A stretch of 64,000 nucleotides of DNA from Pavona decussata (taxonomy: Eukaryota): positions 1,178,001 through 1,242,000 of the forward strand of contig CDRNST010000196.1 of the NCBI GenBank assembly GCA_977016875.1. The letters are read 5' to 3'. Position 1 is the stretch's first letter, and every line of letters begins with the position of its first letter. The notes below the pieces were generated by a model, which saw only the letters and a program-made list of their open reading frames with translations, did not search any database and was not told the origin of the DNA. Position numbers and translations under genes: made by a program. This document shows positions 15,801 to 62,790 of the stretch, piece by piece.

Positions 15801-18800
15801 AAGAAATATATGAATTCCAAGACAGTGTATTCTGTAACTCGCAGTATTGCCAGAATTTTGATTTTTCTGGGCAGTTTTACGTTTTTGTTACCTTCTGAGG
15901 TAAGTACCTTCGATACCTTTACGGTTTTAGCCCATCATATGTCTTTCTGCTTTTTGCTGAGTAACTTTGCAGCTAAATTTCATGTCATAATAAGGGCGAT
16001 CTTGTTCAGAAAATTATGATATACAAGATGACTGATTGCTTCACAAATGACTTAACTTTCCCGTCACATAACATCAAACTTAAATAATTCATCTTGTCAA
16101 GGTTTTGGAAGCTCTCTACCACAAGGAAATTAAACTTGAGACTTCATAAAACAATCTGATTATAATGTTTATGGTGTTCGCTACTGAAAACGGAGAATGA
16201 ACCTGCTCTGCACAGGGCTGCTTCTTTTTTTTTTTTTTTTTCTTGTTTCATTTCGGACATTTCCGTAACCAGGTGGGGCAGGAGGTACATAACTCTCAAG
16301 AGCATTACAGCTATGACAAAACCTTTCTCGTGTGTGTATTCTAAATATCACGATTTTGTGCCAGTAACTGACGCGTAAGCTGGTGCTTCTAGAAATAACT
16401 AATTTTTCTGAGGAAGTTTATTACGGTAAAATAACGAAGACAGATCACCACACTTGTTCACTAATTGACTGAGCTTAGCCAAGTAAAACATTTTTCACTG
16501 AGTGTAGGCTTATGCACAGCAAACGTCTTTAGGTTTGGTTCACACTGGCAACGGAATTGGAAGTGCAGTTGGAATCAGAAGCGAAGTAACCTCCCATTCC
16601 AATGTGAATACAAAACCGGAGACGGAATTGCAACCGTAAGTTCGTTGGAATCGGAAGGGTCAGAACGTTTCCTTTTTCTTCCGATTTCGATTCTGATTCT
16701 GTTGTTTGCGATCAAGTGTGAAGTGGTTGATCGGAATTGGAAGATCAAGTAGAAGGATCAACCAATCCCAAAGCTCATTCCCAATCCCTTTACGTGAGAT
16801 TTAAAACGGAAAACATGGCGGCCTTCCGCCATTTTGAATGAAAGGGAGGCTTCCGTTTCTGCTTCTGTTGTATTGATTCACACAAGGACAGAAGATTTTT
16901 CTGATTTCGACTCTGATTCCGCTTCTATCGCTTATGTCACTAGTGCAAACTAGGCGTTATTAAACTCACTATCAGCCAAAAAATTAAAATGTAACAATGA
17001 AACAAGAAAACGTTTAAGAACAAATCTCAAGGTATGCTTACCGCTGAGGACCAGTTCCTTATTTCTCCTTGTACAGATCCATCAACAGAAAGGAGTGGGA
17101 TGACTTGGCCACCAAACATACCCTCCATCTTGACGTCAAATCCCTCCATTTCAAACACCAACTAACATGACAAATCCACAATAATCAATACATATGTTTA
17201 TAATTTACATATACATTAGCTGCAATTCCCAGGCAAATCCAGGACAATGTTTCCTACCCTTTAGATTACAAGTTATGAAAATAACTTACCGTTTCTTCCT
17301 TACTTTTTTCAGCCTCATTAGCCTCAATGTGGTCGGGAGCTTTCTCTTCAACTGAGGAATCCAAAACAATGTTTATTATAAGTGCCGTTCAGTATTCTTA
17401 CAAGGTAGAAAAACGAATCTCAGCTACTACAACAACAACATTCCCTGAATTGGCCAGTCAACATTCCGTTTCTCAGAAAGTTGATGATGTGTCCATCACT
17501 CCCACCATTATTATGTTACATTCATAGGCTGGATGGGTGACTTGAGATCACGAATGGACTCGCAGCGCCTGCAAGATCCACCTTAACAAGCTGACACAAG
17601 GATTTGCTTCGATGTGCAAAATTTAATTTCCATAAATGAACAATGAAATTATGTGAATATTTACGCATTTTTTATAAGTTGAGATAAATTTGTAAAACAA
17701 CAATACCATAAATTATTTTATTTGCCATCTCCTAAGGGGTTTTCAAGACCTTTTTACAAACTTCATAAAACAATAACAGGGCGCTAGAACACTGGATAAA
17801 TATATTCATGACTATTGCCACACACTGGAATCACAATCATGGGTTGGACTGCAGAGCAGGCAGAACTAGAAAGAACATGTTAGCAAAGGGATGTACGTTC
17901 AGTGACAGAAATGCATAAAAAGATTACCTCCAACTTGAACCTCTTTGGGCAGCAGTCTCAGGTGATAGAGAGAGTCCCATGTCTCATCTCCATCATCCAG
18001 CTTCACGTGATACTTTGGCTCACTTGGTTCAGAAGCATCTACTTCCATCACTGTAGAACTGTAATACCGTGGCTTGTTCTTGAACTTGGCTATCACTCTT
18101 GTACCAGGTTTAATATTGGCAGCTTTTGGAGGAACATCGGGGATGACCCTGTGAGACGCATCTTTCAGTTCATAGAGGAACTTGTCGCCATCGTAGAGAT
18201 CAACGTGTAACTTGGTTCCCTTGTACGAGACAAATCCCTTGTAGTACCTTATTTTCGAGGTATGTGCCCACACCACGGTGCCAACTCCTAACACTCCTTC
18301 AGGAACTAAAAGACAAAAATAGGTTGACTCGTTGTTTCATATCTGATTATGATAACAAGATTGTCAAGATTAATACCATCTGACAAAACAAAACAAAAGA
18401 TTAATACCAGCTACTCCAATAAAGTTTTCCAAAGAAATCACCCTCCAAACACGTAATGACGCATTTTAATATCCGCCATTGATTAAAATGCTTCACTACT
18501 CTCAGAGACTGGGAGTAATTACTTGATGAGCTTTATTGTAAATAACAATTCATTCCGAAAAACAACGTAGGAAAGAATACATCGATTGCATAACATAGAT
18601 TACAAACGTGTTTAAAATGCAGATAGAATGTGTAAAAGCTACGAACCTGTGGCTACAACATCACATAGACACAGGGTTGCTAAAAATGACAACCCGACGC
18701 AAGAATCTAAAGTACAAATGTGGCTACAACAGGGATAGATCAGCCATTGGAACAAGAAAAGCATTGGAGTCGTGGCCATTAAACCTAGCTTCATTTCCTT

Positions 18801-21800
18801 TTCATGTATTTTCTCTTACTTGGTATAGGTTACTCATTTTCAATTGAGTTTGCGATTGGATTGACAAAATAACAGAATGGGCAAAATGTATTCAAAGTGT
18901 TTGAAAACGTTAACTTGAAGGTTTCAGAACAGTTTTATCGTTTCTCTTCACTTGTCTATGTAGAACAGTCATCATAAGAAAAAAATATCCCAAAGAAAAG
19001 AAAGACGTAAAGTTTCCTGGAAACATATACAAAGCTGTGAAAGAAATGTGATGTTATGTTCAATCCTGGTGGACAACAGAGGTATTTTCAATCAGTGACA
19101 CACTGGCAGGCATAGTCAGAAAAAGGAAGCCCCAGTTCCCCCACCAAGAGTCAAACCTTTGACCTACGCAAGGCTTCTGACAATTGCGTCTACATTTTTA
19201 AATTAAAAAAAACGTACCCTTTGCATTTCTTGTCATTAAGATCCGCATTCCGTTAGGACTAAAAATCCAGGTGTCACCACCGCTTATGAACCTAACACGA
19301 TAGATGACCCTCCCCTTCTCTTCCAAATGCTTTATTTCAGCAATGTTTCCAGCCTCCCAAGAAAAGCCATCAAAGGTGGCAATAACAGTAGTTCCAATTT
19401 TCAAGGCTGATGAATCTGGAACAATGTCTGGTACAATTGCAGCGCTGTCGTTTACGTCTACTATTTGCACATCTCCGCCATAGATTCGTACCACCAGCTT
19501 GCTGTACGTTTTGCTTGATACAAAACCCTTTTGGTACATGTCATCTTTGCACCTGACAAACACGATGGTCGAGACAACAATGTCTCCCTTTGGCACTAAA
19601 AAGAAAATGTACATGTTAGAGTACTGAATTATATTCTCGGTTTGACTTAACTTAAATAATTTTATTTCTTAACATTGTTATTTAAAGTCAGTACAAGAGA
19701 AGGGTAAGTGATAATTTTGGAAGAAACTGGCAAAAATGATAAAACGTAGCTTGGTTTGGATGTGTGAATGTTCCCGTTTTGGTTTATGTGTTAAATGTTC
19801 GTTAATGTTTGTTTCTGGTGTGAAAGTACTCCGAGAATTTTCTCACAACAGCACCATTGATCCGCCCTCCTGGAAGTTCAGGATGGTCTAACAATGAATG
19901 AGCACAATGTTAGCCTTTGGGATTCCATTAAAACACGAACACACACAATTGTTTCTGCCGCACGTCATGAAGGAACACATTTAACCTTCCTCTACACAAA
20001 TGAGACCTCCAAAATGTAAGGAAAATCTATCAATGTTTATTTGGGAGTAGTCCTGATTGTGAACATGAGGGACGACTTGAAGAAAGGATAGTACATGCCG
20101 TGTGAACACTGGTTATGAACAATTTTTATGAAGATTACGGCTTTTTATAATAAACGAGTTTCGGATGAAACGTCATCCATCTTCAATGCTGCTGGCTTTA
20201 CGAAAACTTGGTCATGAACAATAGGGAAGACCAGAACAAATGAGCTATCAAAAATGTTCTGTTTTATTTGATGGCTTCAAACTGGTTCACGATGTAAAGG
20301 GAATTTTGATTAAATTCATCAGTTGTTTGAATCTGCAAAACTGAGCGATCTTGTGGATCATTCAGAAGTTATTTCCCACAGTTAAGCTAAGAAAACGATT
20401 AGACTTATGTACAAGCTGTTTTGTGTGCTTCAAAAGTTTGCTGGATCTACTGCAAAAATGCTGACGTATTAAAAAACTATTTCTGTTCCATGTCTTTGCC
20501 ATGTTATGTTATAGCAAGTTGCATAACAGTCAGTTGAAACAAAAAAACAACAACAACCTGACGAATACCTCTCCAACATGGACCCGAAAGCAGTTTAAAG
20601 ACAAAGACAGAAACAATTACCTCCGGGTTTGATGGTAGTGAGGATGCGAATCGTTTCCAAAGTGTTCCAGTCTTCCACCCCATCCCAAAAGTCAACCCGA
20701 TATAGTTTCTCTCCATTCTCCTCCTTATTTTGAATAACTTTTCCCTCGACGTACGAAGTCTCCTTTGGACGTTTTGCAATCACCTGCACGCCAATAGCAA
20801 GATCCTTGGGTTCAGGATTCTTGTCAATAATGACAGCTGAAATGTCATTTGCGTCAAAGAACATTGGCAAGCTGTTATCGAACTGAACGATGGGATTTGC
20901 CAGAGCAGACAGGATGAACCCAGGATCGTAGTTGTGATGGTTAGTGAGCGACCTGGCCAGGACACGCCTCCCAGGGACTAGCTGGTCCTCTTGAACTAGA
21001 ATTATAGTGGATCAAGTAAAATCATGAAAATATGTGACTTCCTAAAGGCAAAATTCATTTTACTTTTAAGACCCCTAGACAATTAACAAATAAAAAGAAA
21101 CAGATGGTCATGACCAACACTGTGTAAAATACAAGCAAATTGCACTGATCTAAGCTTGGTTGCTCTAACTTTAATGTGTCGGTATTATGTTGACGAGAAA
21201 TTGCATGTACAACACCCTTGGGACTAACTACGTGAAGACTAGATTACCTTAAGGCCATTCACTCCACACGATGAATCATTACCTACCGGGTGATAGATAC
21301 CATCTGTCCTCAGTTGTGATTGGCTTTTCACTCCAAAGCTCTACTGCATTTTCAGTTGATTTTGTTTCGCCTTCTTCACTCTTTAACAAAGAAAAGAAAG
21401 TTAAAAAAATATGAATGGCGACATGATACAGTTCAAACGTTTGAGTCTGTGAACTTAATGTGGAATGGTGACCACTTATAAAGTTAGTAAGCAGCCCTTT
21501 CCTGTGTTAGTTTGTTTGCTTGTTTTTGTTTTGGGGGTTTTTTTGGTTTTTTTTTTTTTTCAATTTATTGTCTCTTAACTTTTAGAAAATGGTGACCTTT
21601 GTGTGAGAACAAACTTGTTCTCGAGGTCAAAGCAAGAATATTGCTGAAGGCCATGGCAAGGATGCAGACATCCCAAATCCTTAACATAATAACAGCTAGA
21701 GTAAGTATGTGTTGCTTTGGTTTGGTTTTATGAAAAATCTGTTTTTAGAAGAAAATATCACATTAGCCACTGGTAGCAGGTTTTTCCTTTTTTTCTTTCT

Positions 21801-54800: not shown

Positions 54801-57800
54801 GTCTCTATGATGTCAACCATGCAACATTGATCAAGGTTTTGCCACATGCAGAAATCAGAGCAAGGTTAGAACCTCCTTTTCTCTTGTTTTTAATTTTCGT
54901 TATTTATTTTCTTTCAAGATCCTGGATGATGGGCCAGCCAGAGTTGACCACCCCACCCTAGAGAAGGACGCTCTACGATCTGAGCTTAACAGGAGTTGTG
55001 AGTCATAATTTTCACATTAAAATTTGGATAAATGTCAAATTAATAGAGCATAACTAGTCAGCTTGCCTGTGCTTCTTTATGTGTGTCCATGACCAATTCC
55101 TCAGTCTCCTCCTCACATCTTCCTCAAGAATACTCGTAATTGCATACTTCCACCTAATTGAAGAAGGGGGCAAAGTAGGTTGCAATTGTTTGATATGATA
55201 TACAGCAGCAAGATAAAACATGCTTTCATTAATGATAATATCAATTTTTAAAAAAAAATCACACTGCTCCTCCTTACACTGTCCTTGTTAAGATGTGCTG
55301 TGGCATTATAAGAAAGTTTGATTTCTTGTGTTTACATTTACAACGTTATTTTCTTTTTTTAATTGAGCGAGTCGAGAACACTTTTGTTTTGTTTGGTGAA
55401 GCAGTGCTTAAAAAAATTGTTGTGCCACTGTCTTATCCAATTAGAAATAAAATTAGAATATTGACTTCCTCACATGCATTTGCCCATGATTGACACACCT
55501 ACTTGTATTCGTTTTGAGTTCTAAAATGTAATTGCCTCATTGTGTTGTTTACATCTTCTGTCATTGGTTGGCGTGATAGCCCAAGTTTTGGTTTTACCAC
55601 AGTCAAACGAAACCAGCTTTAAGTTAAAACGCATCCTTATGAAAAAAGTCCCATTGCCTTTCATTTTCAAAAGGTACAAACACTTGTGCATGGCTTATAT
55701 ATGCTTGTAGTTGTCCATGACTATAATACAGTCACTTACCACTGATTGGCATGGCCATGGAGAGGGTTGTTAGGTTTATATTTTCTGAACGTGGAATTTG
55801 TGGCCATTCGATCAAAGGATTCCAGTAATTCCATCACATCATGATACTGCTGCCTCATCAAAACTAAGGAAATCTCTTGCAAGACAAGGCTTAGGAAAAC
55901 CTGGGTAGAAATAACATGCACAAAATAGTCACATTTAATTGTCTGATTAAATACCCAAGGCATGTGGCAAAAACTGGGTTCATTCAGGGCGTTGATTAAC
56001 TGTAAACAATCTGGACAAAAAGACAAGTGCAACGCTCAAAAATAGAATTATCCTTTACATATCTGAATTGTCTGAGCAAACACTGCCTTCCAATTATGCT
56101 ACAGAACATTTTTTGTTTCTCTTTTGCTCATCTTCCTAGACTTAGGTAGACTTAGTATCATTCTTTTACCCAGAGATATGGCTGATCTTTTTCTTGAAAG
56201 GACACTTGTTTGTCCTTGGTACAATGTTTTTGGACCAGAGATCACATGATCAAGACACTAATGACTTTAATGACTAGCTTGTACCTAAAATTCCATCCAG
56301 GGAAAGAACGATCATAGTGATTGATAACATTTGTCTGGGCAATACGTCCCCCTACAGTTGGGACTTCACTGCGTGAAGGTCTCAGTCACTCGGTCTCCAC
56401 TGATTGACAATGTTATGCTCAAAAAACCACTGTGCTTTCGAGACTGAATTACTAAAGAGCAGAGAATTTAAGTACAGTTATACACAAATGCAACAGACAA
56501 GCTGAGAAACCCACAACAAACAAAACAGACCATGTACTGATGTTGCCATAGTTAAGTGAAGCCACCCAGAATACCCCAAGTAATGCATACCTTTGGAATA
56601 CTCAAATCTGAGCCTGGTTTGATGTTCATCTTAACTTTAGTGGTAGCTGAGATTGGCTGTAAAACTAAACCAGAAATTAATTTGCACAGATAATGTCAGA
56701 CTGGTGAATACTGTTGCAGTGTTAAGCAATATCAATTTCTGAGTATGTGTCATTTTGCATGCAAACTTGTGTCAATGCATACAACTTTGTAACTACATTT
56801 ATGCAAATGAAACTTCAACTGCGCATCACCAAAGATCTCTGAGAATGAAAGCAAGAAGACCATTAAGGCTGAGCACCAAATTTTAACCAGCTGGTACAAC
56901 TTGACAATAAAAGGATCACAAGAGGCTCATTATAAAGCGCTTGCCTTCATCACCTCTTTCCCATACTCACGATCACCTTCCTCACAGCACACTCATTCAC
57001 ACCTTCCCTGTGCTAAAACATTCTTACTGACCCTCGAACAAAACCCTGACATGTTAGCCACGTCAAACAGTAACACTCACTGACAAACCCTTTCTCCTGC
57101 ACTTCTGCTGCTAATCCCTCACGATGTTCAAACAACAGCACACTCCCATTATATGCCATCTTAGCTTAGAAATTAACACCTCCTCCAAAAGGGTCTTTTT
57201 AACCATCACAAACTACTTCCTCAATACAAACCCTGCACTACCTTCCTGTTGAGTCTCTCCTCTGCCTTAGTAGATCGGATGTCATCACTCCTACTCCCTT
57301 AACCTCCTTATAACTCTCTCTCCATCACCACCACCACCTTGTTATGCCAGGTGTACCAACCAGACCACATGGCAAATGGATAATTTGACAATACATGATA
57401 GGGTTCCCATAATCACCACATGCATGTTAAGCAACATATGGGAACCTCCATCACGTAATGTCAAATTATCCATTTGGCTTGTGGTCTGGTGACGATGGAG
57501 AGAGCTGTGAAGGGGGTTTAAAGTTCTAGGGAGTAGGACTGGTGAGATCAAATTTAGTAAGGCAGGGGAGAGACTCAACAGAAAACTAATCCGAACACTT
57601 TAAATCCTGCACCAGCCCCAGGTCTGCTCAATGAGTAGTGCTGATTATGAAGGGGCATCGCTAGTCTCCACCTTCAACGAATCCTTCACACTCAGCTTCT
57701 TCCTTTCCCAGTTCAGCTTCCAACTATAGTCCTTTCTGGGCGTACTGGCGAGGTTCACGTGATAATCTGATTTATACCTTGCACAGCACTCGCAACTCAT

Positions 57801-60800
57801 AGTTTTCAATCTCCAACCAAAACCACTCTCTGCTGTTCACTCCTTGACCACATCAACCGGTCTGGCTTTGCAAATTGGTGGCAAACCAGAAAGTCAGCAG
57901 CACCATGTTGAAGGTGAAATGTGCAAAACCTTTTTCACACCATGGTGTACTGCACACCCTAACATCCTCCTCCTTCTTTTACAATGAGTGCGAGGAAACC
58001 AAATAATAAATAGAATAAACGAGATGAAAGACATATGGTCCTAAGCTACAACAGATACGAAACTTTATATACCCAGAGAGAGTGCATCCAAGATAGTTCT
58101 AAATGAACAACTGGTTTTGATACACGGCCTGATCGCGTTTTTTTAACTATGGTTGGTCAGATGCCTTTTCCTTTGTGGTGTAAAATTGGCTTAGGTGCCT
58201 TGGGGTTTCTTTTATGCCTTCTAAGGCTGGAATCGGTGAACTAACACCAGGATAAGAGGTGCTTGGAGATGACGGCAGTGGTAAAATTTCATCTTCAGCC
58301 CTCCTCAATGTTGGTTTGTGGCAGATGACTGGCTGAGGCTTCTGAGAGGCAGAAGATAGCTGTGCTGTGTTGGATGGTTCATCTGAAACCACAGCAGTGG
58401 GTAATGTGCAGATGAGCAGTTTTTCATCCACATCTTCAGGATGAGGGTGTCCGGTGGGGGTGGGGCTGCTGGGCGAAAGTGTACTCGGTTCTTTCTAGTG
58501 AGCCCAATGGGGGCTCTCTAAGATACATGATCTGGGGGAGGGTAGGGCTGTTCCAAGACCATACAACCATGGAGCAGACTTGTGGAAGGGTGACGGTTTG
58601 ACATAGATGAAATCACTGATTTCCATACGTGGCAGTGTGCCGATGGCCCTGGTGTGTTAATGGTGTTAAGTTTGGGCTCGTTTGTTTGGTAGGAAGCAGT
58701 CTACGTGTAAGGCGTCACATGCCCCATTGTACTAAGGTTAGGGTGTGACTGACATGGTTGGGGGGTGGGGGGTGTTTCTGTACAGGAGAGGTTTGTGTAG
58801 GCTGGGTTTACCAGATTTTTTAGAATCCACTTGACCATTTTCACTTAGGCTTCTGATTTCCCATTGCCTGGTGGCCAGGAAGGTGAGCTTGTGCTGTGTT
58901 GGATCTGGTATTTTTGATAGAGCCTTTTAAAGTCAATTGCAATGAATTGGGCACTGTTGTCAGTAAGGAATACCATAAAATACCATGACGAGTAATTTGA
59001 CCTTCTGTTTTTGTTGCAATTGTGATGGATAAAATGTTATCCAGCGCATCGACTACGATGAAATCAGAGTAACGATCTGTTGTGACGAGGTAGGCACCTG
59101 ACTCAAATTCACAGAGGTCTTGACTGACGAGCTGCCATGGGTATCATGGCGTTGGCTGTGACTTCATAGGGGCCTTATAGTTCCGTGTTTAAAATTGTGC
59201 ACACTTATCACAGGAGTGGCAGAGCTCTAGAAAGTCAGACTTCATCCCTGGCCAAAAGCCAACGTCCTTACTGAGACATAGGTTTGATTCTGGTCTGAAG
59301 TTTGCTATGTAAACCTTCTTCAGAACGTGGGCACTTCAGGCCACAGGGATGACTACTGGGTTTTCCTTGTTGATGATCCAATTTTGGCGGTGAGCTCATC
59401 TCTGAAGGTCCAGTAGGAGTGGAGGACCTGGGAGAGTTGTGACTTGCTTAAAAGCCAGCCTTAGATGATGATCTTGGTGAATTCACAAAGGGTAGGATCC
59501 TGTTTATCCAATCTTTGATATCTTCCAACATTTGGGAGGTGATTCGTGGGTTTTGTAAGTGGTGGTCAATGTCAAGTCTGAAGATCTCAAAGTTGCTTTG
59601 CTTCAAGTCGTTAGTGGTAAGAAGTGTGGACCTGGAGAGCGTGTTGGCCAGTAGGAATGAGGTTCCTCTTTTTTGTATGTGACTCTGATAGAGTAACGCT
59701 GCTGCAATGGAGCTGCGTGGAGTGGTTTTTCGAAGACTGTTTCTAGTGATTGGTGGTCAGCCTGAACATTGATTTTAGGGCCATAGATCGACTGGTCCCA
59801 TTTGTCACAGGCTGCCACGATGGGGAGGCATTATTTCACAATCTGGGCCCACAGCTCTTCATTTGGTCATAGTTTACAGGAGATGTAGGCAACTGGCTGG
59901 AGATTACTAGAGTCATCAGGGTGAAGCTGGGCAGCTCCAAAGCCATTTTGCGAAGCATCAACTTGAAGAGTGATCGATTTGTTGACGTCGAAGTGGGGTA
60001 GACATGGAGAGGATGAGATGAGCTGCCTTGCTTTACTGAAGGCCTCTTTATGGACACCTGTCAAAATGAATTCTCTGTCTTACTTTGTGCTGTCAAAGAG
60101 GGGTTTGATAGCATCACAAATATTGGGTAAAAGTGGTTGAGGTAGTTTACCATGCCACAGAATCGTATCACTCCTTTGTTTGTCTGTTGGGACAGGCATG
60201 TTTGATATGGCTCTAACCTTGCTAGGGTCAGGTTCTATGCCTTGCTCAGATATCACATGTCCCATGAAGGTGATCTTTGACAGCTTGTATTGGGTTTCTG
60301 TGGGTTGAAATTTAGGTTCCTTTCACGGGCATGGCTCAAAAGGGTAAGGTGTCACCTTGACCCACCACAAGTATGTCATCAGTTATGCAGTAAACCCAGA
60401 GCTTCATGCATTTCATAGCTGAAGTTCTTCTGGGGCATTGCTAATCTCATAAGCAAGGCGTAACCAGCAATATCTGCCCCATGGAGCATGCAGGGCCGTG
60501 CACAAGCTCGCTTGCTCTGTGACGTTTATCTGAGTTAAACCATGAAGGGCATGAAAGATCGAAAAGGTCTTGTGCCTCGTGCCTGACAATTTTGGTAGTG
60601 ACTCTTCAATAGTAGGGATTTGGTAGCGTGGGATGATAGTGGCCTTGTTCAAGTTCTGACTTGGTCCAGACCAAGTCATAGTTTGGCGGTGCCCCCTGTT
60701 CCTGCATCAGCTGGGGGGTTGGAATACTCCTTTCCCACTCTTCACTACGTCATCAAGTTTTGCTTTTACCTTAAGCAGTTTCGCTACTGCTATCCTATGG

Positions 60801-62790
60801 ATACCAGCATGGAATGGGGTGATAAGGTTGAGCCACAGTTCCAAGGCCTCAAAGTTCTCCTCGTAGTGCCATTGTTGGTCATCTTTCTGGGGGGGTTCCT
60901 GGGGAGTTGTTGTGGATTTGTTTGTTGTATTGTGGGGATTTGGTGTTGTCAGATGACTGTGTGGTTTAGGCACGATGTCTGTTGTTGCTGAGGAAAATCT
61001 TGTCTTGTGGGAGGTTATTACTAATTAGACCAAGACGCTAGCTGTCTTTACCACTGATTAGTGCAGGCTCACCAGGCACGTCTGTTGAGTCTATCACTTG
61101 AAACTCCAGTGTTTCAAAGTGACGGTCCTTCACTCACATGCAAGGCTTATTTTACCTATGGGATGGATGGCTTTTCCAGAGTAGGGAAACATCTTTGCAT
61201 AGGATTGCTGTGGTGGGGGAGGGGTGTTCAATATCTTTTTGTAGACTGATGATGGAAGAGTGTTGATACACATTGCTGCTGAATCTACTTGCATTAGCAC
61301 CGGCACTGTTTTTTCAGGGCTCACAGAGACAAGGAGCAAGGTGAAGTACTTGTCATCCTTGAACGAGTTGTCATAGTGAGTGGAAACCAAGAATGATTGA
61401 ACTATGTAGTCATCATCATCAGGGAGGTATCCACAAGGGTGGAGGGTTGTTCGGTAAACTGATGAGCAGTGTCTGTGCACTTAGCAAGTGAGCGCCTATT
61501 GGACATCCTTTGTTTCTTCTCATACCCCACCTTGAACCTGTCCTTGGAAGATCTGCACACTTTACTAAGGTGGTTCTCAGTCATGTAGCAGTTAGTGCAG
61601 TAGGAACCTGGTTTGGTTACGGGGCATTCGTTGTGGGGATGCCTGAGGCCTCCAGACCAGCCGCACTGTGGTTGTGTAGGGTTGTGAGGTTTGCCTGATG
61701 GATTTGTTTCTCCGATAGTAGGTTGGTAGACTGAACAATGGCTATGTTAGTATTGTGGTGAGCTTCCGATGATTTTGCTCAGGCAAGTTGCTCTTCGAAT
61801 GTGTAGGGGGTTTTCTCTTCTTCTTTGTAATGATAGAGGAGTATCTCCCTCAAATCCTTGTTGTGAGCTCCAGTGTATAAGCAGTCACGCATGAGTTTCT
61901 GTAACGGGTTGGTCATTTCTGTAGACCTCGTCTTTTTGGCCATGAATTTGTGTTTCAAAGTCTTATGGAATAAGAGGGGTTTTGTGTACAGCTGAAGATG
62001 ACATTGTCGTGGCCAAAAAAGTGCTCTTCAAGACGTTGCTGGACTTTTCTCCATTGACTTTTCTCGGTTTCAGTCAGCTTTACAAGAATTGTATTGTCGA
62101 AGATGTTCAAGACGTCATCTGATAGCACAAGGTAAATGCTGCTATTTCACACTGTGCTTTGTCAGCAACCCAATGTTATGGTGTATCCGGATCCTTCTTA
62201 AGTTCTTGCCAAGACCATTGTAGAAGGCACCAGGCATCGAATTTCCATCGCCAGATCCTTACACTTGCCAGTTTGTCATTAGATATTATCAACCTCTGAG
62301 GCTTGCTTTCAGCTGGATGTGCTTTGTGATCAATCAGCAATGCTGCGAAGGTTTTCAAGATTATGTTTCGGTTCGCTGGCTTTCTTGGGTTCCCAACATG
62401 GCTAGGTAGGTTTCTCCAAGGGCTTTGTGTAGGTTCTTCACATAGTTTTACTTCTGACACCAAACAGGCAGAAAACAAGAGAGACAGCAGCACCATGCTG
62501 GAGTTGAAACATGAGAAACTTTTATTCTGATTGTGGTGCATTGTGACCCTACAGACCAAGGTTTAAGCACTGCACCAATCAGTTCACACTACCTCGCCAT
62601 CTCATCTGCATGATTCGTTATCTCTGCAACACTCCATCAGCGTCCAATTGTAAATCGTGGTACATGATGCAAAGCAAAATACATTTGTCACAAACCAAGG
62701 GAAAACAGACAAAATTAACTCACTGTATTTGAAGCCTGGTGGAGAGTAATAGTTTGCTGTCCTGGTGGCTATTCCTCCCTTGGCTTGATT
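718..62790 (-). CDS. VPS13: VPS13A/C-like bridge lipid-transfer protein, multi-exon gene (66 exons traced, about 2668 aa; 5' and 3' ends outside window)
   Basis: Spliced translation gives VPS13A/C hallmark motifs in the correct order: [153 protein letters not shown]. GT-AG boundaries (one GC-AG) and exon phases chain without a stop. Confidence 0.95.
1334..1467 (-). CDS. VPS13: VPS13 exon 65
   Basis: FGAVCAEMLTKDSAAIITVTPYYSGAAPVRLENRTKLDICYKQEG. Confidence 0.9.
1770..2035 (-). mobile_element. Degenerate tRNA-derived SINE with central core
   Basis: Minus-strand head TGGCTTAGTGG...GGTTCGAGCC followed by TTCCTTGGG..CCAGGTGTATA..GTACCGGCGAA core and GAGTAGTAATACTCCCAGTTGCTTC tail. Confidence 0.55.
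2121..2249 (-). CDS. VPS13: VPS13 exon 64
   Basis: CIPFWPVSCPSKNLAIRVGDSSEVSPRFNFEPDVTVVLKMNGK. Confidence 0.9.
2402..2470 (-). CDS. VPS13: VPS13 exon 63
   Basis: YPVLLTDSPDETASSWVLVQPGQ. Confidence 0.86.
2863..2949 (-). CDS. VPS13: VPS13 exon 62
   Basis: [29 protein letters not shown]. Confidence 0.92.
3096..3378. mobile_element. MITE (TAGAGCGGTTT...AAACGCTCTA family); degenerate relatives near 26750-26960 and 55370-55620
   Basis: Terminal inverted repeats TAGAGCGGTTTCCAAT / ATTGAAAAACGCTCTA; shared internal CACGCGTTTTCC and GATTGG motifs between copies. Confidence 0.7.
3645..3749 (-). CDS. VPS13: VPS13 exon 61
   Basis: [35 protein letters not shown]. Confidence 0.92.
3957..4022. repeat. 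Poly-A / A-rich low-complexity tract (another at about 22702-22740)
   Basis: Direct reading of sequence. Confidence 0.85.
4320..4418 (-). CDS. VPS13: VPS13 exon 60
   Basis: ASDDDTVIPHPTSLTEPVMFSYRGKGSLFAKNT. Confidence 0.88.
5021..5119 (-). CDS. VPS13: VPS13 exon 59 (VAB/SHR-BD)
   Basis: [33 protein letters not shown]. Confidence 0.93.
5546..5662 (-). CDS. VPS13: VPS13 exon 58
   Basis: LDNYQRSMWKGQIELWKGMDELTTFTLQSTQEAAYGKFL. Confidence 0.88.
6485..6571 (-). CDS. VPS13: VPS13 exon 57
   Basis: GLPLVELKGGDRWPLFSVRLDGKVILHVQ. Confidence 0.85.
6858..7293. mobile_element. Two adjacent Harbinger-like MITEs
   Basis: GTTTCTCAAAAGTCC...GGACTTTCGAGAAAC inverted pair (about 6858-7095), then GTTTCTCAAAGCTCCCGAA...TTCGGCAGTTTGAGAAAC (about 7093-7293). 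Confidence 0.55.
7448..7579 (-). CDS. VPS13: VPS13 exon 56
   Basis: ITCEEVSYASVNGSLEQAPNYILHVYPPAILHNYLPYNIRYATQ. Confidence 0.92.
8122..8230 (-). CDS. VPS13: VPS13 exon 55
   Basis: YGESSTPLLWNRLASEGHLSIQCPPPAGDGPPFQME. Confidence 0.88.
8680..8831 (-). CDS. VPS13: VPS13 exon 54
   Basis: INNHFPIPMDVLCKKDEQLSRITTVQPDSVYSVPLILAHKAALYLRPAGFG. Confidence 0.9.
9186..9272 (-). CDS. VPS13: VPS13 exon 53
   Basis: [29 protein letters not shown] (acceptor position slightly uncertain). Confidence 0.82.
10556..10714. mobile_element. Short MITE
   Basis: TGGTTTGCA...GCCGCTATGTTGGT and ACCAACATGGCCGCC...TGCAAACCA inverted termini. Confidence 0.55.
11096..11173 (-). CDS. VPS13: VPS13 exon 52
   Basis: VQGYHELKAISIKQSRVILHNIIPKK. 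Confidence 0.8.
12075..12221 (-). CDS. VPS13: VPS13 exon 51
   Basis: SRSAVGSDGMVAIAPGQSLSLRFAKGFDKRASKLERASISGAGPSIGIE. Confidence 0.82.
13021..13062 (-). CDS. VPS13: VPS13 exon 50
   Basis: LGMEVKIRPGNKLE. Confidence 0.8.
13154..13234 (-). CDS. VPS13: VPS13 exon 49 (start of VAB domain)
   Basis: AFKEAVALQGSAEVALEDIPPYQIWNE. Confidence 0.88.
14185..14319 (-). CDS. VPS13: VPS13 exon 48
   Basis: FSMANGDSNLDDSSEAALSLNVESKDKLELTVTKTCLDVFTKLGA. Confidence 0.9.
15175..15303 (-). CDS. VPS13: VPS13 exon 47
   Basis: [43 protein letters not shown]. Confidence 0.93.
15390..15560 (+). mobile_element. tRNA-derived SINE; related minus-strand copies near 19040-19170, 47480-47580 and 52470-52565
   Basis: A-box TAGCTCAGTGGTAG, B-box-like GGTTGACTCC, body TTTTCCGAGT..TGTCACTGACTGAAA shared with the other copies. 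Confidence 0.65.
16528..16958. mobile_element. Degenerate MITE with GGAATC/GATTCC subterminal repeats
   Basis: GGTTCACACTGGCAACGGAA... left end, ...GTCACTAGTGCAAACTAGG right end; repeated (C)GGAAT motifs in both orientations. Confidence 0.45.
17042..17161 (-). CDS. VPS13: VPS13 exon 46
   Basis: LVFEMEGFDVKMEGMFGGQVIPLLSVDGSVQGEIRNWSSA. Confidence 0.92.
17290..17351 (-). CDS. VPS13: VPS13 exon 45
   Basis: EEKAPDHIEANEAEKSKEET; phase-1 entry. Confidence 0.8.
17928..18305 (-). CDS. VPS13 exon 44: inserted tandem Tudor/SH3-like module 3
   Basis: 378 nt open, phase 1-1: PEGVLGVGTVVWAHTSKIRYYKGFVS...RVIPDVPPKAANIKPGTRVIAKFKNKPRYYSSTVM...KYHVKLDDGDETWDSLYHLRLL. Confidence 0.85.
19218..19595 (-). 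CDS. VPS13 exon 43: inserted tandem Tudor/SH3-like module 2
   Basis: 378 nt open, phase 1-1: PKGDIVVSTIVFVRCKDDMYQKGFVS...AIVPDIVPDSSALKIGTTVIATFDGFSWEAGNIA...IYRVRFISGGDTWIFSPNGMRIL. Confidence 0.82.
20621..20995 (-). CDS. VPS13 exon 42: inserted tandem Tudor/SH3-like module 1
   Basis: 375 nt open, phase 1-1: QEDQLVPGRRVLARSLTNHHNYDPGFIL...IVQFD...VIIDKNPEPKDLAIGVQVIAKRPKETSYVEGKVI...LYRVDFWDGVEDWNTLETIRIL. Confidence 0.82.
21287..21380 (-). CDS. VPS13: VPS13 exon 41
   Basis: SEEGETKSTENAVELWSEKPITTEDRWYLSP (matches VPS13A/C LW..K...WFL); phase-1 exit. Confidence 0.86.
22894..23046 (-). CDS. VPS13: VPS13 exon 40
   Basis: VLQLSHISLLSSLPEGGNMRVDVSTGMAYVHVSPPTIRTLTACLMSLAPAK. Confidence 0.88.
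24041..24163 (-). CDS. VPS13: VPS13 exon 39
   Basis: NSIDFHFVQGHGQQKMSGSVSDVVITSAAFDKSRRKSTKSR. Confidence 0.86.
24233..24513 (-). CDS. VPS13: VPS13 exon 38
   Basis: VMEIQSFDVVVNLEYLLVLSNVF...ITVQISIKDPEIVLLADARDKDTNALFLK. Confidence 0.9.
24802..24890 (-). CDS. VPS13: VPS13 exon 37
   Basis: MIERFDGGSSEVKNMIDIQFQQASNQDKT. Confidence 0.86.
25726..25898 (-). CDS. VPS13: VPS13 exon 36
   Basis: PTGEKSSRDEDCCLGQFSLVQVATSGKIMSNSVINANVTLQTCLLDDKRPESEDGVTR. Confidence 0.86.
26976..27354. mobile_element. MITE, Kolobok/T2-like
   Basis: TTAA|AGGGACACTGTCAC ... GTGACACTGCCCCT|TTAA. Confidence 0.75.
27750..27877 (-). CDS. VPS13: VPS13 exon 35
   Basis: AEGADQTDATAPNVSEEVWVTVKFSFEIEEVTAAVFWKETAK. Confidence 0.85.
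28305..28601. mobile_element. MITE with long TIRs
   Basis: ATTACTGTGCCTTTCAATAACATACGGACTCTGAACTTCAA vs TTGAACTTCAGAGTCCGCATGTTATTGAAAGGCGCAGTAAT; similarity extends inward about 80 bp. Confidence 0.75.
28672..28722 (-). CDS. VPS13: VPS13 exon 34 (linker)
   Basis: LSQLEASIKPIAQQGL; phase 1-1, strong GTAAG donor, low conservation. Confidence 0.65.
30033..30117 (-). CDS. VPS13: VPS13 exon 33
   Basis: LCAGEDDIRTIMGILFQNLSEGTIPVET. Confidence 0.86.
30497..30848. mobile_element. MITE, Tc1/mariner-pogo type
   Basis: About 33-bp TIRs C(G/A)GTCAA(C/T)CCAGGTCACGCGTGAACA; TA flanks at 30495-96 and 30849-50. Confidence 0.8.
31387..31534 (-). CDS. VPS13: VPS13 exon 32
   Basis: AIMTDGENIGPTRLVLEPASLAVYLARNLSPWYHEVPDIDVMGKLHAVK. 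Confidence 0.92.
32395..32446. repeat. (ATATATAG)n tandem repeat
   Basis: About 6.5 copies of the 8-bp unit. Confidence 0.9.
32569..32801 (-). CDS. VPS13: VPS13 exon 31
   Basis: [47 protein letters not shown]...DNMVVELKSVQLLR. Confidence 0.92.
33672..33752 (-). CDS. VPS13: VPS13 exon 30
   Basis: DFLNKFQRAKDAMEYARKSAAESATAT. Confidence 0.9.
34303..34431 (-). CDS. VPS13: VPS13 exon 29
   Basis: [43 protein letters not shown]. Confidence 0.92.
34558..34648 (-). CDS. VPS13: VPS13 exon 28
   Basis: MKDLSVMDPTPGALYPKIVSIVNQEVFSLE. Confidence 0.88.
35141..35192 (-). CDS. VPS13: VPS13 exon 27
   Basis: LSAYCVVKGSKTEVTAR. Confidence 0.82.
35974..36176 (-). CDS. VPS13: VPS13 exon 26
   Basis: EESPAVSADGSK...KKKKGDQEEVQIEVTAKLGGIGVTVTSLEGDLSHIIVG. 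Confidence 0.86.
36660..36805 (-). CDS. VPS13: VPS13 exon 25
   Basis: VESDHPEYRSRFKSTQQSVDVEFSSLQVKLHQEALLNIIDLSTRMLPP. Confidence 0.9.
37176..37406 (-). CDS. VPS13: VPS13 exon 24
   Basis: IAVDVGTVDKTGDITPCLELAINGLGTKVVMHPWDLTATASLGSL...ELLSVKFMK. Confidence 0.88.
37438..37625 (+). mobile_element. tRNA-derived SINE fragment
   Basis: GTAGAGCAAC...GGCTCGATTCCCAC (A/B-box-like) followed by T-rich body; no acceptor stem. Confidence 0.5.
38382..38469 (-). CDS. VPS13: VPS13 exon 23
   Basis: ESKLEKAKLEAKEALAKQIKVSLEFEIEQ. Confidence 0.85.
39185..39268 (-). CDS. VPS13: VPS13 exon 22 (symmetric phase 2-2 cassette, second FFAT-like motif LFITPPG)
   Basis: LSVLEAGTAEDDDEEEELFITPPGTPSR; 84 nt; paralogous to 3' half of exon 21. 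Confidence 0.72.
39442..39581 (-). CDS. VPS13: VPS13 exon 21 (acidic tract + FFAT-like motif MFMTPPE)
   Basis: DIPVEEWRYGTRTQSNVTSLGVLEASTEVQHEEQEEMFMTPPETLS. Confidence 0.8.
40162..40227 (-). CDS. VPS13: VPS13 exon 20
   Basis: LAQSIPIPGVETAVDQANTKPV. Confidence 0.82.
41533..41605 (-). CDS. VPS13: VPS13 exon 19
   Basis: IKVSGSLPSVKVHVSDDKLQQVIK. Confidence 0.9.
42280..42397 (-). CDS. VPS13: VPS13 exon 18
   Basis: EDWQSARKQVKSRMHILDPMEIDMKLQKALNPDDIRLAQ. Confidence 0.9.
43032..43119 (-). CDS. VPS13: VPS13 exon 17
   Basis: ELSMEDLESKCYDKFDFKLDDLQILIARA. Confidence 0.9.
43173..44522. mobile_element. Non-autonomous long-TIR DNA transposon, Mutator (MULE)-like
   Basis: About 200-bp imperfect TIRs beginning TAGACTGTTCACAGT / ending ACTGTGAACAGTCTA; exact 9-bp flanking duplication TATCAGGAA (43164-43172 and 44523-44531); internal decayed Cys-containing ORF on minus strand. 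Confidence 0.85.
44634..44715 (-). CDS. VPS13: VPS13 exon 16
   Basis: SCDVLVIDLGRLKITSDPDQERIVSTK. Confidence 0.9.
45164..45231 (-). CDS. VPS13: VPS13 exon 15
   Basis: [23 protein letters not shown]. Confidence 0.9.
45748..45832 (-). CDS. VPS13: VPS13 exon 14
   Basis: LSAAAYSRLEDLKSVSKASLAYAVEHHK. Confidence 0.88.
46265..46323 (-). CDS. VPS13: VPS13 exon 13
   Basis: NTIEHVITFFQPPKDVHLSE. Confidence 0.88.
46883..46992 (-). CDS. VPS13: VPS13 exon 12
   Basis: QHLALFNASFETNPLDGKCDQRAVVSSQPVQVIYDA. Confidence 0.92.
47713..47807 (-). CDS. VPS13: VPS13 exon 11
   Basis: VTAKVDMMKMFGSAGNDGKMPLMITSQDDKT. Confidence 0.85.
48090..48167 (-). CDS. VPS13: VPS13 exon 10
   Basis: SVDVARLSFRDLFADLLQRPSAQAIK. 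Confidence 0.88.
49073..49143 (-). CDS. VPS13: VPS13 exon 9
   Basis: YVENKVIVHLKQISVALRDDTGA. Confidence 0.85.
49946..50043 (-). CDS. VPS13: VPS13 exon 8
   Basis: [32 protein letters not shown]. Confidence 0.9.
50354..51812 (+). mobile_element. Full-length IS630-Tc1-mariner DNA transposon (DD37E type), intronic, antisense to host gene
   Basis: Perfect 29-bp TIRs (CAGGGTGTTTCAAAAGTTCGTTCCGATTT at 50354-50382; reverse complement at 51784-51812), TA duplication on both sides, single transposase ORF. Confidence 0.95.
50640..51689 (+). CDS. Tc1-like transposase, 349 aa
   Basis: ATG at 50640; N-terminal HTH with GRP motif (KPRRGRP), FLFTDE, EDGAPAH, WPANSPDLNPIENIW; 37 residues between second D and E. 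Confidence 0.92.
   Translation: MKSDIVSARAQAAILRSSGHSVKEIAKFFNKTERWVNKWSKRECFEDKPRRGRPSVLTNCARKYIEKAKYKRNNSTRKIAKNLQQTNFQLLSITVWRYMTRKGWKAFKRKKIPLLSAKQRKARLRFAKKYAKLTAEDWDNFLFTDECPKYLFQYPNPKNDTVWGSQECDVPPTFQVKQSAKVMVRGGMTGRGLTKLHMLSTGQTVTSEYYINQILEKEVKPLTSRRQVTGGPIERKLFSSKKEMTFVEDGAPAHTSKATQRWCQKNLPNFIAKDGWPANSPDLNPIENIWSIIDETTYKDPAPKTMKELKRQLRFAWKNVTFDTLKELAHSMPRRLENVIKNKGGHSGY
52091..52205 (-). CDS. VPS13: VPS13 exon 7
   Basis: [38 protein letters not shown]. Confidence 0.88.
54008..54070 (-). CDS. VPS13: VPS13 exon 6
   Basis: ELENELDVLNITICRRQAAYE. Confidence 0.88.
54192..54276 (-). CDS. VPS13: VPS13 exon 5
   Basis: GLCRRYKDLFKQKLLQDKPSDSLVKKLE. Confidence 0.85.
55067..55153 (-). CDS. 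VPS13: VPS13 exon 4 (GC donor)
   Basis: [29 protein letters not shown]; donor AG|GCAAGC. Confidence 0.88.
55740..55900 (-). CDS. VPS13: VPS13 exon 3
   Basis: VFLSLVLQEISLVLMRQQYHDVMELLESFDRMATNSTFRKYKPNNPLHGHANQW. Confidence 0.9.
56591..56664 (-). CDS. VPS13: VPS13 exon 2
   Basis: ILQPISATTKVKMNIKPGSDLSIPK. Confidence 0.9.
57246..57581. repeat. Long imperfect inverted repeat (foldback)
   Basis: Outer arms about 57246-57337 / 57485-57581 and inner arms about 57361-57411 / 57436-57488 are reverse complements. Confidence 0.8.
57965..62462 (-). mobile_element. Decayed Ty3/gypsy LTR retrotransposon internal region (gag-PR-RT-RH-IN) in the intron between exons 1 and 2
   Basis: PBS-like TGGTGTCAGAAGT (62450-62462, minus); gag knuckle CTNCYMTENHLSKVC; protease QVDSAA; RT YQIPTIEE..PWGRYCWLRL..ISNAPEE and YCITDDILVVG; RNase H LQVDASQNGFGA; integrase FWPGM..CDKC, PWQLVSQDL; PPT-like AAAAGAAGGAGGAGGA followed by TGTT at 57961-57980; many stops and frameshifts. 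Confidence 0.88.
62724..62790 (-). CDS. VPS13: VPS13 exon 1 (numbering within window)
   Basis: NQAKGGIATRTANYYSPPGFKY; AG/GTGAG boundaries. Confidence 0.8.

Follow-up and report, generated by a model that had tools for sequence, protein, structure and literature searches.

A predicted array of three tandem Tudor modules inside the VPS13A/C proteins of cnidarians

Bulk lipid transfer from one organelle to another is carried out by VPS13 proteins, which owe their sites of action to accessory domains. Some of these domains are lineage-specific inserts, such as the UBA and ricin-type lectin domains of VPS13D, the beta-sandwich of VPS13B, and the PH, C2 and Vps62 domains of plant VPS13M1/2 (PMC7613979). 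The VAB domain, too, is inserted between the last bridge repeats, which are RBG10/11 when numbered as in VPS13A (PMC7613979) and RBG12/13 in VPS13C (PMC13430412). The present analysis concerns 64,000 nucleotides (nt) of the coral Pavona decussata (contig CDRNST010000196.1, positions 1,178,001 to 1,242,000 of the forward strand), hereafter the window, in which a VPS13A-like gene carries three consecutive exons that are each predicted to encode a tandem Tudor domain. Overall, it is likely that the VPS13A/C gene of a stem cnidarian gained this triple tandem Tudor array and that the array serves as an extra partner-binding surface at the contact site.

The part of the VPS13A-like gene within the window spans 718-63212 on the minus strand and corresponds to approximately residues 205-2877 of the Montipora orthologue, which has 3574 residues; the C-terminal part of the gene falls beyond the window. 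By tblastn, some 60 exons match the VPS13A-like protein of Montipora capricornis in collinear order, with identities of 50-93%; this is a species distinct from the window coral, whose closest retrieved species is Oculina. Pfam VPS13_M matches occur in profile order (profile positions 136-210 at 32801-32487, 439-542 at 24565-24191, and 737-779 at 15351-15157), and a VPS13_VAB match at 5302-4979 lies downstream of the array. Since the VPS13_M matches flank the array, it is placed inside the VPS13 middle region, between profile positions 542 and 737. All named relatives of the gene are VPS13A or VPS13C, and among solved structures the Montipora region matches solely VPS13C and VPS13A chains. With Branchiostoma VPS13A as the query, the best matches in the coral genome are at the window locus only, which makes it the sole A/C-type gene found, and the first coding exon is found at C196:1256769-1256876, about 14.8 kilobases past the right end of the window. 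By these sequence comparisons, the gene is of the VPS13A/C type, as a sequence-only reading of the window had proposed, and is closer to VPS13A/C than to VPS13B or VPS13D.

A second VPS13 paralogue is present elsewhere in the coral genome (G000:C66:2179910-2232417), with clear VAB-domain exons and a weaker match to Branchiostoma VPS13A; it is presumably the VPS13D- or VPS13B-type gene of the coral. The search of the genome with the VAB family found solely this paralogue and missed the short VAB exons of the window gene, and it is uninformative on copy number.

The insertion site can be located by the exons on both sides of the array. The last segment of the bridge domain before the insert is encoded by the minus-strand exon at 21287-21383 (5' boundary uncertain by about 3 nt), which contains the motif ELWSEK..RWYL, is 66% identical to Montipora VPS13A-like residues 1691-1722, and aligns with human VPS13C at about 2240-2259. 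Behind the array, a short, charged linker exon of 62 nt (17290-17351, minus strand) leads to the exon at 17038-17161 on the same strand, where the bridge domain restarts with the motif LVFEMEG..NWSS. This exon is 76% identical to Montipora residues 2125-2166 and aligns with human VPS13C from about 2286, and with the matching segment of VPS13A. At the site of the array, human VPS13C has approximately 27 residues (about 2259-2286) whereas the coral protein has about 400, and human VPS13A likewise has a short loop. The residue numbers of the VPS13C structure (PDB code: 9yqp) can be taken as native since the construct carries a C-terminal tag (PMC13430412). The VAB domain begins about 200 residues after the array. 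By inference from these positions, the array would hang from the last bridge repeat before VAB or from the junction before VAB, at the bridge end turned towards the acceptor organelle.

The module exons all lie on the minus strand. The exon of module 1 (20621-20995, 375 nt) encodes the most variable module and that of module 3 (17928-18305, 378 nt) the most conserved one, with the exon of module 2 (19218-19595, 378 nt) between them. Each is open solely in the frame starting at its own third base, has AG directly before it and GT directly after it, and leaves one base after the last full codon; therefore, all three are of phase 1 at both ends. Together they comprise 1131 nt, or 377 codons. The three modules are 28-29% identical to each other in pairs and share 19 invariant columns. 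The sequence-only reading had described these open, AG/GT-bounded phase 1-1 exons of 375, 378 and 378 nt with a pattern common to all three, had set them between the two VPS13 motifs named above, and had pointed out that they would add about 377 amino acids where human VPS13A and VPS13C have a short loop upstream of VAB. On the sequence, and on alignment to the solved structures, these descriptions were confirmed, and the invariant columns agree with the pattern.

Public sequencing runs that contain the window sequence belong to one coral species, and transcript contigs were available from three studies. The runs that are probably RNA contain about one quarter of the sampled words, which equals the exon share of the stretch. 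In the compared region (16300-21700), coverage by transcript contigs X1 (6709 nt) and X6 (6491 nt), as well as by shorter X5 contigs, is confined to exons. The joints seen are 21287|20995, 20621|19595, 19218|18305, 17928|17351 and 17290|17161, the first four of which are the junctions expected from the sequence-only reading. All of the skipped segments are bounded by CT..AC on the plus strand, that is, by GT..AG for a minus-strand gene. The module exons are expressed and are constitutively included in the contigs seen. A low-depth joint in X6 from 21368 to 18016, with six extra letters, connects the interior of the upstream VPS13 exon with the interior of module 3; neither end is a splice site, and it was treated as a probable assembly chimera. 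Within an intron at 16662-16886, word depth rises to 620 in a coral metatranscriptome run (X10) and many short contigs end there. This segment probably has nothing to do with VPS13 and represents a repeat or an element that is transcribed in abundance.

By structure prediction, each exon encodes one packed tandem Tudor domain. Module 3 exceeds the Pfam cut-offs of both Tudor_5 (35.4 bits, cut-off 31) and BAHCC1-like_Tudor (35.2 bits, cut-off 28), and its AlphaFold2 model, built on a 75-sequence alignment, shows two five-stranded barrels with a mean predicted local distance difference test score (pLDDT) of 90.1. The best Foldseek matches of this model are the tandem Tudor of BAHCC1 (template modelling score, TM, 0.75), the Tudor of SETDB1 (0.71), and SGF29 (0.65-0.68). 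A second structural aligner gave the same three proteins over 111-120 residues, with Z scores of 13.7 for BAHCC1 (root-mean-square deviation, rmsd, 2.5 Å over 117 residues, 24% identity), 13.4 for SETDB1 and 12.2 for SGF29. A 53BP1-type arrangement was set aside (TM 0.40, rmsd about 7 Å). Since 53BP1 aligns at a TM of 0.40 only, the barrels are arranged as in BAHCC1, SETDB1 and SGF29, unlike those of 53BP1. The best profile match for the module is SETDB1 (4e-11), among solved structures the sequence of module 3 directly retrieves BAHCC1 alone, and a search of the ESM Atlas returned generic Tudor and Agenet clusters only.

Although the Pfam matches of modules 1 and 2 are sub-threshold, both modules share homology with module 3. 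Module 1 is matched by DUF4537 over both barrels (1.4e-5, 25.5 bits, cut-off 27), and module 2 has weak sub-threshold Tudor matches including Tudor_5; in the Pfam scan of the window modules, DUF4537 did not match modules 2 and 3. The orthologous arrays of medusozoans reach 46.4 and 37 bits with DUF4537, above the same cut-off, and precomputed annotations assign this family to Montipora, Nematostella and Hydra. The fold of the whole array was predicted on the Montipora orthologue (P0170:1690-2130), standing in for the window exons. This model has six barrels, with disordered linkers on both sides, a pLDDT of 74.5 and a predicted TM score (pTM) of 0.57; the equivalent of the 62-nt linker exon (model residues 410-441) is of low confidence. 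Since the pTM is 0.57, the relative placement of the three barrel pairs is uncertain. The earlier proposal of two barrels per exon, six in total, and of a tandem Tudor fold is thus borne out by the AlphaFold2 models and the Foldseek matches, with BAHCC1 as the best match. Its more specific comparison with DUF4537 stands for the orthologues, whereas module 1 of the window falls just short of the family cut-off.

The array is not confined to the window coral. According to Pfam annotations and local hmmsearch, exactly three modules occur at the same site between VPS13_M and VAB in all sampled VPS13A-like proteins of cnidarians. These include the anthozoans Montipora capricornis, M. foliosa, Oculina patagonica, Stylophora pistillata, Pocillopora verrucosa and Nematostella vectensis, the hydrozoans Hydra vulgaris, Hydractinia symbiolongicarpus and Clytia hemisphaerica, and the scyphozoan Sanderia malayensis. 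Four further sequences have the same three modules: P0023 (a Tara Oceans marine sample) and P0025 and P0164 (ENA assemblies), all nearest to hydrozoans, and P0168 (JGI and Logan), which groups with Sanderia. The arrays are collinear in alignment, and module 1 of medusozoans has about 30 extra residues. A local hmmsearch detected no module in the VPS13A/C proteins from Ptychodera, Branchiostoma, Octopus, Latimeria, Patiria and Tubulanus, and the relevant Pfam families are annotated in none of approximately 110 further bilaterian VPS13A/C proteins. On these sequences, the array is an old, phylum-wide accessory domain across three cnidarian classes rather than a narrow oddity.

Two further searches have a limited bearing on this distribution. 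A search of 1.84 billion representative sequences with a three-module profile gave 280 proteins, of which just two were full-length VPS13 proteins. Since the known full-length VPS13 proteins of corals and Nematostella are missing among the 150 matches listed of these 280, this search is unusable as evidence of absence for any lineage. A search with the Montipora array region, which relies on exact 5-residue words, returned four stony-coral proteins; it adds species and sets no outer limit.

The array is already contained in RefSeq and UniProt models; in UniProt, those of Nematostella and Clytia carry the automatic name "Tudor domain-containing protein". Literature searches combining VPS13 with Tudor, DUF4537 and cnidarian terms gave no description of a Tudor domain in any VPS13, and the survey of VPS13 accessory domains does not contain the words Tudor, Nematostella or cnidaria (PMC7613979). 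Therefore, the sequences and an automatic label are public, and the accessory domain itself is previously undiscussed in the papers found. The sequence-only reading, which knew of no VPS13 with such an array, was right in so far as no paper was found, and not with respect to the protein models, two of which carry the Tudor name. Its suggestion of a lineage-specific feature needs correction in that the insert is not narrow but conserved in Anthozoa, Hydrozoa and Scyphozoa, and the survey of orthologues divides accordingly, with the array throughout the sampled cnidarians and in none of the bilaterian VPS13A/C proteins examined.

The probable evolution of the array can be described as follows. 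In stem Cnidaria, three copies of a tandem Tudor module, each on a single phase 1-1 exon, would have entered the VPS13A/C gene, most likely by exon shuffling and tandem duplication from a stand-alone tandem Tudor gene family that is still found in cnidarian genomes. The resulting stretch of about 377 residues, with six beta-barrels in three packed pairs, would replace the short loop of human VPS13C. As with the VAB, PH, WWE and UBA domains of other VPS13 proteins, the array would help to place or regulate the bridge at the contact site, through binding of a partner at the acceptor-membrane end of the bridge. Module 3 may be the main binding unit, and modules 1 and 2 may be more freely evolving auxiliary units or spacers.

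A potential source for the modules is present in the coral genome, where at least 14 further module-like matches were found on other contigs, each within one open frame. Such single open exons are located at C60:2577842-2579806, at C80:1472548-1475327, 1246659-1249715 and 5771972-5772322, at C275:733463-734542, at C162:33143-33478, and on C89, C104, C84 and C35, and they often occur in neighbouring pairs. By a heuristic applied to the letters, several of them have a consensus donor (GTAAGT or GTGAGT) one base past the last full codon, with the acceptor lying two bases ahead of the first, as in the phase 1-1 exons of the array. This fits an origin of the array by shuffling of exons from that family and later tandem duplication. 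In Nematostella, stand-alone proteins contain between two and four modules of this kind, and the coral loci look like stand-alone multi-module Tudor genes akin to Nematostella LOC5502812, LOC5502073 and LOC116605099. In eukaryotic proteins from metagenomes and transcriptomes, the same type of module is fused to FERM and FA domains, to BTB-BACK, to RING, and to long EF-hand arrays (P0054, P0062, P0052, P0036, P0092, P0053). Because of these fusions, the module type is not confined to chromatin proteins, and they suggest that this type of Tudor may have cytoplasmic, membrane-linked or cytoskeleton-linked uses.

The relationships among the modules were examined in a tree of 39 modules. Strong clades of M1 and of M3 are found in Anthozoa, and strong clades of M1, M2 and M3 in Medusozoa. 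Since the joining nodes lack resolution, the tree neither shows nor rejects a triplication before the split of the two groups. A single origin of the array is supported instead by the identical site and the collinearity of the modules.

The division of roles proposed for the modules is consistent with their rates of change. Module 3 is 94% identical to its counterparts in Oculina, Stylophora and Pocillopora, compared with 58-65% for module 1 and 61-67% for module 2, and the median for all VPS13 exons in the window is 72-77% (Stylophora, Oculina). Against Stylophora as well as Oculina, module 3 ranks first among the VPS13 exons of the window, above every bridge-domain exon. When transcript contigs of the same species were compared with the window, 4 synonymous and 1 nonsynonymous variants were counted in module 3, 4 and 2 in module 2, and 5 and 16 in module 1 (21 sites in 375 nt), where run X6 also has an in-frame 3-nt insertion (GAG) behind 20888. 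Therefore, module 3 is under strong purifying selection, as shown by its 94% identity and the 4:1 ratio of synonymous to nonsynonymous variants. Module 1 is nearly neutral or diversifying, and yet it is open and recognisable throughout the phylum; its unusually high variation within the species could be due to relaxed constraint, diversifying selection or divergent haplotypes.

If the array binds a partner, one candidate for the ligand is a methylated lysine, a possibility also raised by the sequence-only reading. The pocket of BAHCC1 for H4K20me1 lies in the C-terminal barrel and is formed by W1990, Y1998, F2020, D2022 and D2024, the replacement of which by alanine abolishes binding (PMC12219854). 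When the second barrel of module 3 is aligned directly to these five positions (W, Y, F, D, D), the residues are F, Y, L, D, D in the window coral, Oculina, Stylophora and Pocillopora, F, F, F, D, D in Nematostella, and Y, Y, F, N, E in Montipora, and they are mostly lost in hydrozoans and scyphozoans. Modules 1 and 2 have a partial cage only. A near-complete cage is thus found solely in the second barrel of module 3 and solely in anthozoans, and several paralogous modules elsewhere in the coral genome carry the complete W/Y/F/D/D set. From the aligned residues, a methyl-lysine pocket of the low-methylation type is plausible in module 3 of anthozoans. Since the cage residues are kept only there, such a pocket is not a feature of the array as a whole.

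It is possible, though unlikely, that the array is a reader of methyl-lysine, in which the second barrel of module 3 would bind mono- or di-methylated lysine on a protein of an organelle surface or the cytoskeleton and so make the bridge responsive, at its acceptor end, to a methylation mark. The cage positions of module 3 in the window coral and Nematostella, the two Tudor families whose cut-offs it exceeds, its rank as the most conserved exon, and the complete cages of its paralogues are all in keeping with this. However, the cage is not kept wherever the array is, as Montipora and the medusozoans show, and no cytoplasmic target with methyl-lysine is known here. The extended form of this idea, in which a protein-methylation mark on an acceptor-organelle or cytoskeletal protein would steer cnidarian VPS13A/C via module 3, perhaps for cnidocyst biogenesis, is to be regarded as rather unlikely. 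We know of no report of methyl-mark reading by any lipid-transfer bridge protein, and, if true, such steering would link bulk lipid transfer to a post-translational code.

The incomplete cages of most modules also fit an array with no external ligand. It might be an internal regulatory or structural element that packs on the bridge or on VAB, with a role in gating of the groove or in autoinhibition, or it might be a spacer. The rapid, spacer-like evolution of module 1 fits with this, and human VPS13C is reported to be regulated by a C-terminal conformational switch (PMC13430412). However, the conservation of module 3 exceeds the need of a spacer, and the disordered linkers predicted on both sides suggest a flexibly tethered unit. 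An internal role is improbable on this balance.

The symmetric exons raise another alternative, a regulated cassette in which the exons are included or skipped by tissue or condition so as to give isoforms with zero to three modules. Since all of the exons are of phase 1-1, any combination would keep the reading frame, and RefSeq has many VPS13 isoforms from corals (e.g. isoform X9 in Pocillopora). However, the contigs from three studies hold all three exons and contain no joint that skips an exon of the array, although assembled contigs could drop rare isoforms, and every full-length cnidarian model retrieved has all three modules. Regulated inclusion is therefore quite improbable. That the modules are an artefact, belonging to a distinct Tudor gene inside an intron of VPS13 or to a mis-assembled region, is hardly credible: stand-alone tandem Tudor genes do exist in cnidarians, but single contigs run from VPS13 exons through the three modules and back into VPS13 exons with canonical splice sites, which refutes it unless the contigs are chimeric, and the same architecture is present in independent genomes and transcriptomes of at least nine named species.

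A partner-binding array gained in stem Cnidaria remains the likely explanation, and several points weigh against it. The function of the array is read from its fold and its position alone, and the array model itself is of moderate confidence (pLDDT 74.5, pTM 0.57), with the mutual placement of the modules not fixed. Neither modules 1 and 2 nor any of the medusozoan modules have a complete cage; therefore, a single conserved type of ligand across Cnidaria is not evident. Within the species, module 1 seems to evolve almost neutrally, with 16 nonsynonymous and 5 synonymous variants. With respect to a single origin, the nodes that link anthozoan and medusozoan modules lack resolution, and for the time of the gain the comparison covered stony corals, Nematostella, hydrozoans, a scyphozoan and bilaterians, which date it only loosely.

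Apart from the array, the window contains fragmented, retrotransposon-like frames at 58150-62000 on the minus strand, in which a gag-like zinc knuckle and reverse transcriptase-like and integrase-like stretches were recognised by eye. These frames occupy part of the VPS13 intron that is bounded by the exons at 62725-62790 and 56579-56665, are oriented like the gene, and have a G+C content of 0.42-0.44 compared with about 0.38 elsewhere.

The ligands of accessory domains are the main route to the cell biology of VPS13 and to the human diseases linked to VPS13A-D. A Tudor array that is strongly conserved throughout a phylum and placed at the acceptor end of the bridge would be a kind of accessory domain not included in the survey of these proteins (PMC7613979), and a module of 125 residues with a recognisable pocket may offer a handle on VPS13 partners of a new class. 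For work on the array, several cnidarians are tractable, among them Nematostella, Hydractinia, Hydra and Clytia. It may also be viewed as a clean case of domain gain by means of symmetric exons that each encode one module.

The host protein compares closely with human VPS13A and VPS13C (PDB codes: 9yqp, 9yg5). The order of N-terminal region, middle region, VAB and C-terminal modules is the same, and the segments flanking the coral array align directly to both human proteins; however, the human accessory domains are WWE, VAB, ATG2_C and PH and not Tudor (PMC7613979), whereas the coral protein has the Tudor array. The inserts of VPS13D, VPS13B and plant VPS13M follow the same principle, namely, a folded domain that is not part of the bridge is placed in a bridge loop, mostly near the C-terminal end, and is thought to bind partners. 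None of the inserts in the VPS13 survey is of the Tudor type (PMC7613979), and the coral insert differs also in that it consists of three repeats, each encoded by a separate exon.

With respect to the modules, the top structural match is the tandem Tudor domain of BAHCC1 (PDB code: 8ye8). Module 3 of the window retains the two aspartates of its cage as well as two of its three aromatic positions. BAHCC1, however, belongs to the chromatin proteins of the nucleus and has a single tandem Tudor domain, coral module 3 has leucine in place of the cage phenylalanine, and modules 1 and 2 are without most of the cage. The triple Tudor of SETDB1 and the tandem Tudor of SGF29 are packed double barrels of the same type as the coral modules. 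Both read histone H3 marks in chromatin enzymes, and their domain count and context differ from those of the coral array. DUF4537 (PF15057) has a profile that covers both barrels of a module, with the window modules below its cut-off and the medusozoan orthologues above it; to our knowledge, this family has no known function.

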